DNA of 64,000 bases from Ascidiella aspersa. Taxonomy: Eukaryota. The stretch spans positions 14,756,001-14,820,000 of the forward strand of contig OZ004612.1 in NCBI GenBank assembly GCA_963924565.1. The letters run 5' to 3'. The notes below the pieces were generated by a model. It did not search any database and had not been told where the DNA came from. It was given only the letters and a program-made list of their open reading frames with translations. The translations under genes were made by a program, and so were the position numbers. Of this stretch, positions 75 through 57,324 are shown in pieces (position 1 is the stretch's first letter; every line of letters starts with the position of its first letter).

Positions 75-3000
75 GAAAACGGCAAGCTCATTCTTCGTTT
101 TAACGTTGGTGGAGCGAGCGACGTGGTGCTGAGAGAAGGAATGTCCGTTTCGGACGGAAGCTACCACACTGTGCAGGTGCGCCGCCAGTGGCTGAACGCC
201 ACCATGCGTGTCGACAATTGGCCGGTCAGAAGCGTCGCCCCGCCCGGTAAGTTGGTCACGTGATGTTGATGATACAAATAGTTACGTTTGTGTAACGTCG
301 AGTATTTAAATAAACAGAAAAAGTAAAATCGACGGTTTGATTTTTTTGAAGATTTGAAATATACGTGTTTTTCTATTGTTGTAAAACTAATTTACTAGAA
401 AACAAATGGTTGTTGACGATTTTTAAAATCCAAGTTTTTGGAAATATTATAATTAACAACGTTAGTGTGCTACAATTTGGTAAAAAGTTATTATTGGTTT
501 CTATTTTCACCTTTGATTATACTGCCTAAAAAGAATATGAATAAAAACCTTGCATTCTGACCGATAGTTGTACAATTTGCATGTGCATTTTACTTAACGT
601 TCATCGTTTTCAATAGCAGCAGTAACATAACCATCATTTTAGCTGTTTATCCCGTTAACCTTAACCAACAACCATCACCGCTCTGTAAAACGATGTGTGG
701 CCTGTTTCTCTCGATGCACGTGAATACTAACGATTTCATCCTAACCGAATGGCATAGCAGGAACGCAGTAACATAAACGTCGTAACAACCGGTCTTGGTG
801 TGCTGGCGGGAAGGTGGCCAAAATAATTCCACAATAGAAAAGACTCACCGGACAAATTTGGTTAAATTGTTTACCGTTTAAAACACGAAATGTAGAGCGG
901 CACATGATCATTTTTTTTAATCATATCATGATCCTACGTTTGCAATACAAAAGCCCCGCCAATTATGTTAACGCTTTATTAACAACTTAAAACACCCGAA
1001 ATCCATTGTCAACCACAAGTCTCAGGTCCCCTGATAAACGCGAACAGTCATTAATAATGTTAAGTCTAATTAGTGAACAATTATATTTTCCAAATTAAAA
1101 AAATGACTCAGACGACATAAACTCTTGTGTAAATTCAATTTCATCTTGCTCCTATGGAGCTTGTCTCCAAAACCCAATAACAAATTTGCTCTCCCCACGG
1201 TTCCTTCTTTTATATACGTTTCTTGTTGTAGGGGATGCACGTTCCCGCTTTGCTCGCGTGATACCCTCGATAGCTTCCCCTGCCCGTCCCACCATTGATA
1301 AGTGGTTGCAACGCAAAGGTACTAACAAAACTCGGTGTCGTGTACATTCTTAATATGCTTCCTAACATGTTAAACACTATACTTTGTATATACGGTCGTG
1401 CTGTCTGTCTATGTTTCTGTATTTAAATGCTACTAACCCTGTTTATTTACATTAACGTATTACGCTTTGTGCATGAACCCTAGTTTTTGTTTGGTCAAGA
1501 CAACAATTGCTGCTTTGTACAGCGAATATTTCCTCCGTAAACCATCTGAATTGCGTGATTACACACGTCTGTGTTCGAAAGCAGCTCGTTTTCAACCTTG
1601 CCAAAACTACATTGCCTTTCTGAAAAAATAAACAAACATATCGTATTGTTAAGTACTGCAAAATTACGATTGAACCCATGCTTGATAATCCTAATATTCA
1701 AGTAAAATCCTGTGTATGATTAACCTAATCCATAAATTGTTGTAAATTCTCTAAAACAGTAAAACCAAGTCGGATTAAAGCTTTCATAACTCTTCACTAA
1801 AATTAATAAAAATCGGTGTGGACGTATTTTATGTACGATTTTCACAAGTTTATAAAGATTTATGAAAAGTATGATTTACCGATCACCTGAGTGCTTTTTC
1901 TGCAGTCTACTGATACAGTTAGAGAAACCCTGAATTAAACCGCTGTCGATTTAACAGTATTCGAACGTTGCGCACCGCCAAGAGACTAACTTATTCTTTG
2001 TGCAATTTAGAGCAACAAACCTCGGTTTTCAACTCACAGTCGACGATCCAGATCGGAGGCTTGCTCGGTGAAGACGTCTTGTCCACTCTTGACCAATCGC
2101 GGGACACCCGGACCGTGGCCATAGATCGGCCCTTCCGCGGTCAGATGACCGGCCTATTTTTTAATGACGTCAGGGTGTTTCAGCTCGCAGCGCAACGTAC
2201 GTGGTTTTCAAATGTTTTAGTTTTATTTTTACTTTGGAAGTAAAAACATCTTGATAGAATTCGTTTATGACAAATGTTTAAAACAAAGTTTTACCCTGGG
2301 AAAAGTTCATTGCGCTTCAACGATTGGTAAGAATAGTTAATCGTTCTCTGCCTATCGAAGAGGGGTTTTTAAACTATACTTTTAACGCGAATACTGGCAT
2401 TTTTCTCTATTAAACACCAAAGTTTGAAATTATATACACCAAGATTTGAATCAGGCATTCATGAGCCCCCAACAACTGGTCCTTAAGGGGTTCGTGGACT
2501 CCAGTTTAAGAACCGCTGGTATAGAGACACCGATCTTCTCGCAACCGTAGTCATATGTAGCCTGGTAACGTGTTTTATTTCGATTTGTTCAGGTGACGAT
2601 CAGGTTCGCTTTCTTGGCGACGTGACGCGGATCGGTGGGCCCGATTTGCTTCCCACCTCTCCAACGATAAACCAGCCGACTACCACGATGGCAACGCTGA
2701 CCATTTTTTCGACCACAAAGTCGTCTGAAAACGTCCCCAACGTACGAATGGTTTATTACACTATTCCAAGGCTTCTTAATTAGTCCACTGCGACCTTTTA
2801 AAAAGATTCAGGGTCATACTTGTTTTGCTAAGCGGCGATAAAGTTCATGTTCTTTGAATGTATAAATAGTAACTATCCACTTCGTTTCTTTCCAATCAAG
2901 CAAGTAGAAGTTTAGGAACATTTTAGCTTTTCGCACTTTATATGTTGATCTATAAATATGCATTTCACTGGAAATCTACCGGTGATGGACACGGGCCCAA

Positions 3001-6000
3001 ATATCCACCTCGGTGTAAATTACGTTTCTCGTTAAGGTGAAGGGATATAGATAATTTATATTTGTTAAGTTTGACCGCTCAAGATGCGCGCTGTTTGCAT
3101 AGTTTGCTCAGAACGCTAAATAAATGTCAATACTTTTTAACTTAAAGGGATCGAATTCCTACGACTGTGACGACGAAGACCTGTGCCCAAACTCATCAGG
3201 TAAGAATAAACGAACTAATTTCACTAGTTTTTATATCAGTGTGTTTGTCAGACAGCGGTGATGTTCACTCTCCAACTTATCACTGAATAATTTTTACCGT
3301 TTAAAAAGTTTGTTTTATATTGAAAGATTCATGTTCATAAAGTTTGAAATCAACATTTGGTTTAATTGTTTTGGCAACTTGTTAAAACGCCTTAAAGTAA
3401 AAAACCTTTTTATATTAGTTATTGTTATTCAACGCTCACAGAAAAACGACCAACGGGTGGCAAATTTTAACGACACTGTGAACATATTTTGTGAATATTT
3501 CGATTACGTATGCAGCTGGCTTGTGATCTTTTGGTGAAAAATGTCAACAATTCACTGACTGGCAAACACGCTGTTTACCTTAAGTAACGATAAACAATTT
3601 GATTGAGTAGCTGCATGTTTTCAGCTATGTCGCTTGGCTAACTGTGCAATACACTCTTTTTTCGTCCTCCCTCCGACACCCATTCCACAAATTACCAAAA
3701 AACCTTCACAAACCACCACCATCACAACCAATACCATAAACAACCATCGACATTTGAAACCGTATTTCGAAATACAGCCTACTCTTACAAAGGCGCCGAA
3801 ATCAATTTGTACGATTGTAACAATGGTTCGCCATACATGTCAGCAAACACTGTTAAGCGCATTATTCCGGTTTTGACTTTCGTCGCATTTTTACAAAGCA
3901 CATGATCTTCTTGCTTCCCCCACATGCGCCTTTTTTCAAGAATTATGCAAATAACCTGTTGCTTAACCTGTATGCATTTTAACCTTGGTCGAACACGTGT
4001 AATTGTTTTATAATGCTGTGGAAAAAACGAGTTTGGGTGAACGATCATGTATACTACATTGGCTGCTCACACAAAATTTAACAGAATAGAGTAAACATTT
4101 TACACGTTTAAAATAGCAATCACATTTAATAAAATACTAACACCTTTATTTTGATGTTACACGCTAACTGTCGTGGGGAAATACAATAATAACACGTAAG
4201 TACTTGTGTAGCATTAGATGTACTATGTTATTTTTTGTTTGTAATTTTGTTTCCAAAATTCAGTTGTACAGCCGTATAGATAATAATTAAACCATAGCAA
4301 CTGTTTACTAATTTTCCACATACGATCCAAACACTGGGAACGTTGCAGAAACGCAATTGTTTATGGGATGTTTTTCACGAACTAAATCACGTTTTTTTAT
4401 CTCGACAGGTTCCGGATCCGGATTTTTCGCCCAAATTGGCGAATCCCAAACACTAAGTGACGTCACACAAACCACATCTTTGCACGCGAGCGCCGACAAT
4501 TCCCAACAACGGGGTCAGGGGGGAGATCAGAACGGGGAAGGCCTCGAGTCGCTTCTCATGATTGCCGGCTTTTACACGACGCAATTGCCCACACTTTCGA
4601 CAACAAAGAGCAGTGTACGTGACGCGGATGCTGACGTCATCAATAAAAGTCCACGCGGCACAGAGAAGGTTACTTCCGCGCCGGTGGTCATAGAAGGAAA
4701 TGAGAGGCAGGAGAAACTATTCTACGACATGCCAAGCCTAAGTGAAATCCTCGACATTTTCACGAGTCCAGAAGTCTTAAATGATCCTAATGAAAAGAAA
4801 GATAACTCCTCCAAATCCGCCTCTTTCACTTCTGATATAAGCCTGGATGACGCTCTAAAGTTTTTCACTAATGAAGAAACTTACGATCCCGAAGTTGGAT
4901 CTGTATATGACCCCATCGCGCCAAGCCAATCATCTCGTAACGTTGTAGATTATCAATCCGGTGATGTTCGTTCACTGACAACCTTACCCGTGACCCGGTC
5001 CTCGAAAAATCTTAATCTCCTGAAATCGAATCCGCGTTTAGAAGAACATTCCGCTACCCCGACACTGATCAACCCCCCTGTTGCACCCCCTTTTGTGGTC
5101 ACCCCTCCTTACGTTGATACAACCAAACAGACCAGCGCAGTTGACTTCGCCCACTCACTTATCACACACAGTCCCACAAAAAGCATGTTCCACACACTAG
5201 GATTAAAAAGCACGGTTAGCAAAGAGGCAGAATCGAGCACTCCACCATCGCATGCGAGTAACCCACGTATTGTTTTGCCTTTTCCCACCCCTACCCACAC
5301 CTCACCAGGTGCACATACTGACCCCGCCCAGCCTACATCAACCTTTTCCACCACGACCGCTGTGGCAGATTGGCGCGACTTAGCGTCTGGCGTAACGCTC
5401 CGGGATTCGGCGCCAACTAGTTTAAACCGCCTGGAACCGTCTACCGACATTGGTTATTCTTCGCCGCCCCCGCCGATTCCACCCATGACGCCAACACGGT
5501 CAGCCAACACCCGCACTCCCACTTCCACTATAACTTCTGACACCAACACAACCTTTACCCGCTCTTTGCTAACCGACGTCATCGTGCGTGATGTCACAGA
5601 TCCGAAGAGCGATGTTACCGCGCCTGAAGGGAACTCGAACGCCGGTGGCGGCCAGCCGATGCCCAACCCCCATAACCCACGACGAGGCAACATGATCAAC
5701 GTCAGTAACACTTCCTCTACACCCAGTAACGTCACCGGTTACGCCGGCTCCAATGTCACCGGATCAGTGATGATCAGTGACGCTGGTAGTCTTACGACGG
5801 TGATGATAGCAGGAATAGCGGCCGCTGCTGCCTGCTGCGTGCTTCTTCTCTTTTACATGATTTATCGCTTCAAGTATCGTGACTCTGTGACGTACAACGT
5901 GGACGAGCGTGAGCGTCAATACGGCGCCAACCCCATCAAAGGCAAAAAGGTTGTCCAGACCAAAAATGGCTCCATGAAGCGCGACCCTAAAACGCAAAAA

Positions 6001-6030
6001 ACTGACAAAGACAAGGAATATTACGTATGA
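75..6030 (+). CDS. NRXN: Neurexin, 3' portion (LNS6 domain, Cys-loop, Ser/Thr-rich stalk, TM helix, PDZ-binding tail); gene begins upstream of the window
   Basis: Exons with GT-AG boundaries and consistent phases: 75-246 (ENGKLILRFNVGG...DGSYHTVQVRRQWLNATMRVDNWPVRSVAPP), optional 1232-1318, 2011-2196 (EQQTSVFNSQSTIQIGG...PFRGQMTGLFFNDVRVFQLAA), 2593-2741, 3148-3199 (SYDCDDEDLCPNSS), 4409-6030. The last exon ends MIYRFKYRDSVTYNVDE...KDKEYYV*, matching the neurexin 4.1-binding motif and the vertebrate neurexin C-terminal KDKEYYV. Confidence 0.95.
1232..1318 (+). CDS. NRXN: Neurexin splice-site-4 (SS4)-like cassette exon, 87 nt, phase 1-1
   Basis: Polypyrimidine tract and tgtag acceptor, gtacta donor, frame-preserving. 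Encodes GDARSRFARVIPSIASPARPTIDKWLQRK at the same LNS6 position as vertebrate SS4 ([30 protein letters not shown]). Confidence 0.85.
3778..3905 (+). CDS. Candidate alternative terminal neurexin exon encoding a GPI-anchor-like C-terminus (SS5-like)
   Basis: First AG after a 151-nt AG-free zone with a CTAAC branch point and polypyrimidine tract. Phase-1 join to the Cys-loop exon gives AYSYKGAEINLYDCNNGSPYMSANTVKRIIPVLTFVAFLQST*. AATAAA at 4128. Confidence 0.6.
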
Positions 6031-14374: not shown

Positions 14375-15089
14375 CTTCTAATTGGCTTCAAAAACCGCTC
14401 ACGCGTGCCACTAGTTGCGGTATCCAGGTTTCATAGAGATCAGTGGATCAGTGACTATTCTACGTTTTTTGTGTTTTTTTTGGGTTGCGGGTTACCACAA
14501 ATACAATGTTTGCTAAGTGTTGCATGTCACTTTATTGTTATTGCAGCTGCAAATTATGCGCCTCTGTAGAAACTAATAATTACGACCGCACAATGATTAC
14601 GGCCACCCAAACAGACCTTGTTTGTAAATATTTTGTAAAATTTGAACTGGTAAAACATATCGGTTTTGGGTATTACCGAAAAAGCAAACCCTAGTAAATC
14701 TGCCTTTTTCTTTTCTAAAGCTAATGAAAGTCGTCTACTCACTCGACGAAGGAAACACGAGACTTCTATGTAGTCAGTCTGTCAGGGTTTTTGATGCCAC
14801 TGATAGTAACTCAATCATACGTTCTTTTGTTTTATAACAACTTGCAGTGGGAACTATAATGGATTTCGAACAAATGTCAACGAAGATATGTACATTGCTT
14901 TGTAATGAATGACGTTTTGACGTTATTTATCCAACTGCATTGAAGTTAATAGGTGCGCTTAAATGTGTTCTCTCTGTATATAACGATTAGCCATGGGTCA
15001 ATTATATTAAAATATCTCCATGGTAAAATCAGTTATTTTAAAATAAGGAAGTATTGAGTTAGGTGCTAAGTTGACTTTTTGTGGCGATA

Positions 15090-18000
15090 ATGGCTGAAAT
15101 GACTGAGACTAATCTTACTTCGGGTGAAGCTATGCTGGGTGAGGAATCAACTGTCCAGCTGCTAAAGAATGGAAAAGGTGTTGAAGTTGCAGTATTGGAC
15201 AAAAGTAACAAATACAAGCAAATTGAAGCAGAAAGAAATAGTGAAACAAGAACTAAGCTGTACAAAAGGCGATTCCTAGTTCTTGGCATTTTTTGCCTCT
15301 ACTCCATGTCAAGTGCTTTTCAGTGGATTGAATATGCAATCATTACTGACATAGTGTTAAAATATTACAATAACAGCTCAGTACTAGCTGTAGCATGGAC
15401 TTCAATGATTTACATGCTTACTTATATTCCACTAATGTTTGTTGCAACATGGATGCTGGATAACTGGGGTATGCGGCGGAGTTTGCTATTCGGTGCAACC
15501 TTGAATGCAATTGGGGCTCTCATCAAAATACCCAGTGTCAACCAAGATTTTTTTTGGCTCACATTTACAGGTATCTATTGGAAACTCGTTATCAACAAAA
15601 TTACACATTTTAGCAATTGTCAGTTGTTTTACCCTTTCACACTTGTGTAAAATTAATCTAGAACATATACTAAATAGAGTTAAGCCCTATTTCCTTTTAA
15701 ATCTAAGATACTCTCAATTATTTAGCCAGTTAATACCAACATGTAATAATAATTTCTTTACATATTATACCAATGTGCTTATTAGTTATTATATTATATA
15801 TTTTTAGGTCAATCAGTTGCAGCTTGTGCTCAATCCTTTATCCTTGAAATTCCCCCAAAGATTGCTTCTTTGTGGTTCAGTGCTTCTGAAGTTTCAACTG
15901 CTACTTCTGTTGGAGTGTTTGGTAATCAGGTAACAAACTGTTGGCCAAAATTGTGATATAAGTTCAGAATGAAACAATTTTGATGCACTTATGTTAAATA
16001 ATTAATTTAGAAATAAACTGGTAGCACAGAATCAGTGGAATTATAATATATTACAAGTGAAAAAAAAAACTTTATGCAGTTAGTTGGAGCTCTTCGCTGC
16101 ATAGGCATAGCAATATAATAAGGGTGTTTTTAGCAAGTTATACCAATTTAATTATTTTGCATGGTTAGAATTGTGCAAATGTATGCAGGATTACTTAAAG
16201 CAATTACATGCCTTACTTTTTGTTTCACCATTTTGCATTAAGTTGTGTATGTTTTAATTGTGTAAAATTGGTGCATTGTATTCTTAAGCTACACATTTAT
16301 GTTATATATGATTAAAGCACATAATAGCAATTTTGTATAAACAACTGTGCCATTAGGGAATGTGGTGTTAAGTCTCTCTTGTGAATAGTATTGCCTACTT
16401 TATAAACCAAATATTTTTCTAGATGTCAACAGATAACAATGTATAATTAATCCATTTTTTAAATAAACAACAGGCTTAATTTGCATGTTAATTCTAGTTA
16501 TAAATACCATTAAACAAACTCTATATATTGAATTATTTAGACATGGATTTCATTTTTTAACATGAAGTTCAAGCCAAATTGGCCCAATTTGTTGTATTTA
16601 TAGTAACTTAAGTAAGAAATTTCACTATTTACAGATTGGACAGAATTAACTGCAGAATACTACCAACCCAATTTTTTTTTTAAATAAATTCACACCAATT
16701 AATTAGATTTGCTTAAGTTTTCAGACCGCTTCTAAATGCACCAGCAATAAAAAACTGCCCACAATCTAAACAAGGTTGTAATTTACAACATTTCCTCAAA
16801 TACTAGATGTTTCCATTAACACAGTGACCAAAAGTGCCGTATTAGTATTACCAAGTAAGATCTATCTTAACGATTAAAAAATTGGAGCAAATGGGTATAA
16901 AAAAAGGCACTAAAAAAACAGGGTTTTATATTTTTTTTAAAGAATTCTATATCTCCATAAAAAAGCCTTAATATACAATTACATATACATAAATTAAAGT
17001 AGCGAAATATCCATGTGCTTTTATTTTTGTTCAATAAATTCTTTAATTCCTATGTACAATAATAATGTTTTGTGATTGCATTTAATCAAACGCTTAAAAA
17101 GAACCTGTAAGTGTTAATGTAAACCGTTAGCTTCCCGTGACCTTAAATAGTTTAATATCCATCAAATGTTTTACTATTTTACTGGCATTGTGAATTTAAG
17201 AGACTTTTAACTTGTTGGCTTAGAGGCGCACCTATATCTGCATGCATTAAACAGAGACCTGGTTAATGCCGTTGGTGTTATTTTGAAGACCCTGTGTGGC
17301 CAGGCCAGTTTCAGGAAATGTTAGCTATCAAAAAATATTCACCTTGCCACCACACTAATAACCTCTATGCAGAAGGTCAGTGAAGGTTCTGTCCTTCAGT
17401 AAAGCTTAATTGCCACACTGGTCAATTTAGTTATACCACAGACAGTCTGCCAAGATAAAACGAATTCTTTACCTCATGGCTTAGTCATATGTTAGCATTA
17501 ACCACCTAAGGCACATCTGAGATAAGTAGACTACTTGTTCAATTATACTACGTTTGTCAAAAAAGTCCACTGAAACATGAAGATAATTTGATTAAAATGA
17601 TCTGTTGCACTTACAAAAACGCAGTTACAAAAACTGTTAACTTAATATTAAAAAAAAAACATATCCTCTAGAGAAAATCCAATTTTTTAACAGTTAGGTA
17701 ATTCTGCAGAATAAATTTAAACACACAAAATAAGAACAAGACTGGTATAATCCTAGCTATTTAAACATACTTAACAGACTATTTATTTTTACATGCAAAG
17801 GTTTGTATAGTTGTAAAGAAAATTTGTGTTATGTAAAATCAACCAAAAAAATACTAATGTTACACACTTATTTTTCCTTATTTTAAAAGCAAAAACATCT
17901 AATGTTGTTCGACAAACATGTCTCTACCAGTCACCTTTAAATTATGTTTTTATTCTTTACATGTTTGCTGGCAGTTGGGTGTCGCTCTCGGTTTCCTTAT

Positions 18001-56523: not shown

Positions 56524-57324
56524 ATGGAGTTTGACACTGACATATTTTGCCAAGAAAGGGATATTATTCTCAAGATACGAGAACTCAACACTCACATTGT
56601 CTGTGGACTATGCGCTGGATATTTCATCGATGCAACAACAATTTCTGAATGTTCACATACATTTTGCAAGAGTTGTATTGTTAAGCACCTACAAACAAAA
56701 AAATCCTGCCCGGAATGTGGGCAAAAAATTCACGAAACTCAACCACTCCTTAATCTTCGAAGCGATCGTGTTATGCAGGATGTAGTTTATAAACTGGTGC
56801 CAAATCTTTTTCAAAATGAACAGCAAAGAGAATCTGATTTCTGTCGAGTTCGAGGCACAGACTTTGCTTTGAGCCGTAGTCATTTGCTAAATATTGGAAC
56901 TCCACTGAAATATACCCAGCAGAAAGTGCTGAAAGATTTTGTTGATCTCATGATACCTACCTTGGATGCTCAGAAAGTACCGAATCTTCATGAGGCACAT
57001 CTATATTCACATGATGAAAAAATCACATTTAGATTGTGTGCAAAAAAAGAAAAACAAGATCAAATAAACAATCGAGATGATTACAAACTTAAAACTGGCA
57101 AAGAAAAGTTTGTTCGTTGTCCAATTCGGGCTACAGTATATCATTTACTTTGCGTTTTAAAAAAAATTCTGCATAATGATAACAAGCAGCATATAATCAC
57201 TCTTACCTGTTGTGGTGTTTTGCTTTTTGAATCATGTACCATAAAACATGTACTTCTTTTGAATTGGTATAGTTCAGATAAGTATTCTGAAGATATTCCT
57301 TTAATCGAATATGAAATTAGCTAG
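56524..57324 (+). CDS. PCGF1: Polycomb group RING finger protein 1 (PRC1.1 subunit), intronless, 266 aa
   Basis: C3HC4 RING KIRELNTHIVCGLCAGYFIDATTISECSHTFCKSCIVKHL...CPEC...KIHETQPLLNLRSDRVMQDVVYKLVP, closely matching PCGF1 (IHETQPLLNLKLDRVMQDIVYKLVP). C-terminal RAWUL-like segment KFVRCPIRATVYHL. Confidence 0.92.
   Translation: MEFDTDIFCQERDIILKIRELNTHIVCGLCAGYFIDATTISECSHTFCKSCIVKHLQTKKSCPECGQKIHETQPLLNLRSDRVMQDVVYKLVPNLFQNEQQRESDFCRVRGTDFALSRSHLLNIGTPLKYTQQKVLKDFVDLMIPTLDAQKVPNLHEAHLYSHDEKITFRLCAKKEKQDQINNRDDYKLKTGKEKFVRCPIRATVYHLLCVLKKILHNDNKQHIITLTCCGVLLFESCTIKHVLLLNWYSSDKYSEDIPLIEYEIS

Follow-up and report, generated by a model that had tools for sequence, protein, structure and literature searches.

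An exon orthologous to the vertebrate neurexin SS4 cassette in an ascidian genome and the possible age of the SS4 switch

The 87-nt segment found inside the last LNS domain (LNS6) of the neurexin gene described here is, judging by comparison across species, a real, conserved coding exon of an ascidian neurexin and the orthologue of the vertebrate SS4/AS4 exon. The window, i.e., the whole stretch of DNA that was analyzed, is 64 kb long and corresponds to C6:14756001-14820000 in an assembly of 308.6 Mb (75 contigs). No molecular switch in the specification of synapses has been studied better than SS4, and its dating bears on the evolution of vertebrate synaptic diversity. In vertebrates, cerebellin binds neurexin with the insert, and LRRTM and latrophilin bind neurexin without it.

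The pre-vertebrate age of the exon is already known, its presence in a sea squirt having been published in 2014. Uvarov, Kajander and Airaksinen (PLoS One 2014, PMC3933685) described a homologue of the AS4 exon from Ciona intestinalis and from lamprey, found no such exon in fly and sea urchin, though an intron is present at that position, and placed the origin of the exon early in chordate evolution. According to the original prediction for this DNA, SS4 as a switch predates the vertebrates. This holds for the exon, given a tunicate orthologue and a literature record that goes back to 2014 (PMC3933685). An exon predating vertebrates is thus the published half of the prediction, and a pre-vertebrate switch is contrary to the published view. 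We consider the chances that the switch itself predates the vertebrates to be roughly even.

The DNA belongs to an ascidian closer to Phallusia than to Ciona, and not to a vertebrate, as far as it can be placed by its neurexin. This placement follows from the best matches, the per-exon identities and the LNS6 tree. The upstream LNS6 exon served as the query of an exhaustive HMMER search, in which the best matches were the neurexin-3-like protein of Phallusia mammillata (CAB3264446.1, E 2.8e-27) and the neurexin-1-like protein of Clavelina lepadiformis. Exon by exon, the window neurexin is 52-79% identical to that of Phallusia and 54-58% identical to neurexin-1a X3 of Ciona intestinalis, which is another ascidian. 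In the LNS6 tree, Clavelina, Phallusia and two marine metatranscriptome proteins form one clade (99/100), sister to the vertebrates (97/97). The Phallusia neurexin matches C6:14716151-14762027 exon by exon and the rest of the assembly weakly; thus, the genome contains a single neurexin gene. All this agrees with the invertebrate chordate host that had been proposed from the letters of the DNA.

The 3′ end of the neurexin gene, located on the + strand, occupies the initial 6 kb of the window (Table 1). The exons were searched singly, not as a joined spliced model. Alpha-neurexins are marked by LNS-EGF-LNS repeats, followed by a stalk, a transmembrane segment and a tail with EYYV as its PDZ-binding end. 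The gene is assigned to them by the exon-by-exon match, the KEYYV tail, and the Laminin_G (Pfam) and neurexin (PDB) matches. The upstream LNS6 exon matched Nrxn1-alpha in PDB (phmmer, E 4.5e-20), most strongly along LNS6, as well as Laminin_G_2 in Pfam (1.9e-9), and it is 79% identical to residues 1204-1261 of the Phallusia neurexin. The downstream LNS6 exon matched neurexin LNS6 in PDB (Nrxn2-beta, phmmer, E 2e-5) and shares 67% identity with Phallusia residues 1290-1352. The last exon ends with KEYYV and a stop codon and encodes a Syndecan-type tail according to Pfam; its acceptor lies further upstream than the first position listed.

Table 1. Coordinates of the neurexin features and of other coding segments in the window. 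A slash marks an exon-intron border.
Feature	Position	Strand	Description
Upstream LNS6 exon	75..246	+	172 nt, phase 0 at the start and phase 1 at the end; ..MRVDNWPVRSVAPP + G; donor CCG/gtaagt
Intron upstream of the SS4 exon	247..1231	+	985 nt; UWAA at 3.2 per 100 nt (no enrichment); TGCATG once (578-583)
SS4/AS4-orthologous exon	1232..1318	+	87 nt, 29 codons, phase 1-1
Intron downstream of the SS4 exon	1319..2010	+	692 nt; UWAA 3.5 per 100 nt; TGCATG (1470-1475); TACTAAC (1320 and 1431-1437)
Downstream LNS6 exon	2011..2196	+	186 nt, phase 1-1; starts (E)QQTSVFNSQSTIQIGG; donor CAAC/gtacgt
Next neurexin exon, LNS6 end and stalk start	2593..2741	+	68% identity to Phallusia 1344-1402; splice sites
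Last neurexin exon, 3′ part: stalk, transmembrane segment, cytoplasmic tail	5302..6030	+	52% identity to Phallusia 1418-1654
Exon of MFS / sugar-transporter-type protein	15081-15650	+	
ORF of Polycomb-group ring finger type	56524-57324	+	266 aa

The SS4 exon begins after the acceptor ..cttgttgtag/GG, which is preceded by a pyrimidine-rich tract, and ends at the donor AAG/gtactaac. It encodes Gly, in a split codon whose first G is position 246, followed by 28 residues ending with DKWLQRK. When the exon is included, its last G (1318) and the AG of 2011-2012 make a Glu codon; on predicted skipping, the G of position 246 joins the same AG and also gives Glu. The reading frame is kept with and without the exon, as originally claimed. 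A symmetric exon of about 90 nt, as is typical for SS4/AS4, was found here, with 87 nt and phase 1-1, and it is single-copy within the 64-kb window. The claim of such an exon at the SS4 place of LNS6 is borne out by the AG/GT borders, by flanks that encode LNS6 and by the identical residue position. The coordinates and junctions first proposed also proved correct, apart from the end of the downstream exon, which lies at 2196. It should be noted that the splice sites of the SS4 exon are not weak: the pyrimidine tract is good, and the GTAC-type donor is found after two constitutive exons of this neurexin as well.

AT-rich introns often hold short in-frame ORFs with splice-like borders, and the segment could in principle be one of these, an open frame that lies by chance between AG and GT in a 1.7-kb intron. 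We consider this extremely improbable. The segment shares 69% protein identity with the matching part of the deposited Phallusia neurexin (tblastn, E 6e-7) and has orthologues in three further tunicate lineages, and such cross-species conservation refutes a chance frame for practical purposes. Furthermore, the 69% identity falls within the range of the neighboring LNS6 exons (67-79%), and the SS4 exon is thus under comparable constraint.

The exon shares with the vertebrate SS4/AS4 cassette of Nrxn1-3 (90 nt) the gene family, the LNS6 loop, the insertion residue and the split-Gly junction. The insertion point is that of vertebrate SS4: nine residues separate the W of D-x-W-P from the split Gly, and six residues separate the insert from FNSQ. 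The same nine- and six-residue spacing was observed in the window, in the tunicates and in every vertebrate SS4+ protein retrieved. Several differences from the vertebrate cassette were also noted. The window insert is one residue shorter, and Gly is replaced by Glu at the junction on predicted skipping, whereas Gly is kept in vertebrates.

Orthologous inserts were found in Phallusia CAB3264446.1, Ciona X3, the Clavelina models and a tunicate-clade metatranscriptome protein (JGI P0122). Eight inserts (window, Phallusia, Ciona, Clavelina, P0122 and one of each of the three vertebrate paralogue types) can be aligned with no internal gap, vary in length at the N-terminus only, where they differ by one or two residues, and give the consensus R-[FL]-A..IP..V-[DE]-x-W-L-x-x-K. 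Of the motifs proposed as conserved between the window and vertebrates, the C-terminal D.WL..K holds, and the ‘ARxxIP’ match turned out to be three residues out of register. The gapless alignment puts I-A of the window insert in the conserved I-P column.

In a search with the window exon peptide alone, no neurexin match was obtained in PDB (phmmer), the peptide being below the detection limit; the intermediate tunicate inserts were therefore used for comparison. Global alignment scores were compared with those of 5000 shuffles. The window insert reached z 5.4 against the Nrxn2 type (0/5000 shuffles reaching the score), z 3.7 against the Nrxn3 type (15/5000) and z 3.2 against the Nrxn1 type (25/5000), and the predicted relationship of the peptide to SS4 inserts was thereby upheld. 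For Clavelina against the Nrxn1 type, z was 7.0 (0/5000).

The lack of a significant PDB match of the window peptide to SS4+ neurexins, together with just 6-8 of 28 residues identical to the vertebrate inserts, might suggest that one ancestral intron gave rise to an exon twice, once in tunicates and once in vertebrates, and that the likeness of the two is convergent. However, the eight inserts are gapless, share the phase and are of nearly equal length (87 vs 90 nt), the R-[FL]-A, I-P and V-[DE]-x-W-L-x-x-K columns are common to them, and Clavelina bridges the tunicate and vertebrate groups with its high score. Independent exonisation is thus very unlikely in our opinion. No insert of this kind was found in the 20-odd non-chordate neurexins sampled, which have a short loop, mostly of 24 residues; the sample included insects, molluscs, a brachiopod, an annelid, a nematode, two hemichordates, two sea stars (nine isoforms) and a sea cucumber, and the chordates compared with it were tunicates and vertebrates. 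We suggest that the SS4 exon arose in an ancestor shared by tunicates and vertebrates; its place of origin would be the phase-1 intron, itself conserved, at which the beta10-beta11 loop of LNS6 is split.

As for the use of the exon, we lean slightly towards inclusion by default with skipping in part of the transcripts, i.e., a cassette as in vertebrates. In difference from vertebrate SS4, we infer the alternative use of the window exon from its relatives. Inclusion in the window species is expected because the insert is present in the deposited Phallusia protein, in two published Ciona ESTs and in Clavelina models (8/9), as well as in the Ciona X3 model. Skipping is suggested by one Clavelina RefSeq isoform, and by the rule that exons born within introns generally begin as alternative ones. 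Clavelina, which represents another ascidian order, has an orthologous 87-nt exon. Its isoform X6 (XP_076815572.1, 1912 aa) equals X1 (XP_076815567.1, 1941 aa) minus exactly 29 residues, both being automated predictions. At the X6 junction, Arg..Glu is replaced with Lys, as expected for a skipped 87-nt exon with a phase 1-1 junction codon.

Uvarov et al. concluded that Ciona does not skip the exon and proposed that AS4 skipping probably came later, in vertebrates, on the grounds that Ciona ESTs keep the exon (n=2, both with the exon, 0/2 skipped; Table S6), that LRRTMs are absent from tunicates and that the Ciona introns are short and UWAA-poor (PMC3933685). Thus, one half of the ligand switch invoked in the original prediction, the LRRTMs, is reported absent from the group. 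If this proposal is correct, the SS4 orthologue is constitutive and always spliced in by tunicates, and regulated skipping and the ligand switch are vertebrate-only, having arisen with LRRTMs and the KHDRBS triplication. The exon is indeed contained in nearly all tunicate protein models, and in the window it has ordinary splice sites and no UWAA cluster. Constitutive splicing is a serious possibility, to which we give a little less than an even chance. On the other side, two ESTs are too few to exclude skipping, Clavelina X6 is without exactly the SS4 exon, the Clavelina gene is also annotated as variable at a number of the other canonical splice sites of neurexins, and a KHDRBS-like gene is present in the window genome. 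A regulated tunicate cassette, if true, would contradict both the two-EST inference for Ciona and review statements of vertebrate-exclusive extensive splicing, such as a 2025 review in which extensive neurexin splicing is described as seemingly exclusive to vertebrates (PMC12665717).

The nine Clavelina models also differ from each other at an SS3-like site (13 residues vs Gly), in a 19-residue cassette, in a 435-residue stalk deletion (X9), in a swapped first LNS6 exon (X3) and in the loss of EGF3 (X8), besides SS4 (X6). Taken as predicted, this multi-site variation is a vertebrate-like pattern.

Other tunicate sequences were sought with word searches. The window upstream exon gave no candidate protein fragments, P0001 limited to LNS6 returned only P0001 itself, and the whole P0001 returned mostly fish neurexins, with Ciona X3 as the sole new tunicate. 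A tunicate-clade transcript from a JGI metatranscriptome (P0003, 265 aa) has a signal peptide almost directly before LNS6 and does not contain the SS4 insert; its layout is beta-neurexin-like. The literature describes the beta-neurexin layout as vertebrate-only. In a metagenome scan for the SS4 site, the only find was L005:2702-3264, on a contig with no taxon assigned, where the reading frame crosses the SS4 site with neither intron nor insert. P0003 and L005 were set aside as evidence for skipping, since their lineages may have lost the exon.

Vertebrate SS4 is skipped under the action of KHDRBS (Sam68/SLM2) proteins, which work through intronic elements rich in UWAA. Unlike vertebrate SS4, the window exon is not accompanied by a UWAA-rich response element, and its flanking introns are shorter than 1 kb. 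The density of UWAA near the exon was 3.0-3.5 per 100 nt vs 2.8 in neighboring introns and 2.5 window-wide, so there is no enrichment around the exon beyond background; the counts of TGCATG and YCAY were likewise at background. The AS4 exon of Ciona intestinalis (PMC3933685) is a direct orthologue with the same position, 29 residues added, short introns and few UWAA motifs, but its introns (441 + 430 nt) differ in length from those of the window (985 + 692 nt). The donor of the SS4 exon, gtactaac (1319-1326), holds a perfect TACTAAC branch-point heptamer, with a second copy 112 nt further. TGCATG, a motif of the Rbfox type, occurs once in the upstream intron and again at a distance of 152 nt downstream of the exon. 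The TACTAAC and TGCATG occurrences are within chance expectation.

A survey by Ehrmann et al. did not reveal any homologue of KHDRBS in Ciona intestinalis (PMC3636136). In contrast, the window genome has a KHDRBS (Sam68/SLM2)-like gene at C4:27463558-27466300 (L013:5559-8170). Its Qua1 exon is above the Pfam cut-off (47 bits), and the best PDB matches of its KH exon are KHDRBS3 and KHDRBS1 (2e-14), with SF1 and Quaking ranking lower; RG-rich exons follow. Ascidians thus seem to differ in the presence of KHDRBS. We suggest a regulated tunicate cassette that only some of the neurons would skip, perhaps under the control of the KHDRBS-like protein, so that the SS4 switch and a multi-site splice code would have been present in the tunicate-vertebrate ancestor; we regard this proposal as equally likely to be right or wrong.

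Where the exon is included, it adds 29 residues to the LNS6 loop, on the rim of the face with which this last LNS domain binds its ligands; without the exon, the loop is back at its ancestral length, exactly that of the non-chordate neurexins. By analogy with vertebrate work, we infer that the tunicate insert affects ligand choice: at the rim, it may weaken or block the binding of ligands that need a bare rim and make a site for others. If the exon was alternative before LRRTMs appeared, the original partner of the switch would have been something else, e.g., neuroligin or a C1q-type ligand. In that case, tunicates would offer a simple system for finding this partner, as ascidian nervous systems are small and fully mapped.

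About five C1q-domain loci were found in the genome: C6:23110435-23110848 (L007), C4:1142873-1143235 (L006), C2:8148034-8148797 (L008, L010), C4:25694609-25694767 (L011) and C9:26353388-26353696. No clear cerebellin orthologue was identified; the L007 ORF (145 aa), the one compared, was about equally close to Caprin-2, adiponectin and cerebellin-1.

Outside the neurexin gene, the window includes the transporter-type exon and the ring finger-type ORF listed in Table 1, the latter with RING and RAWUL domains.
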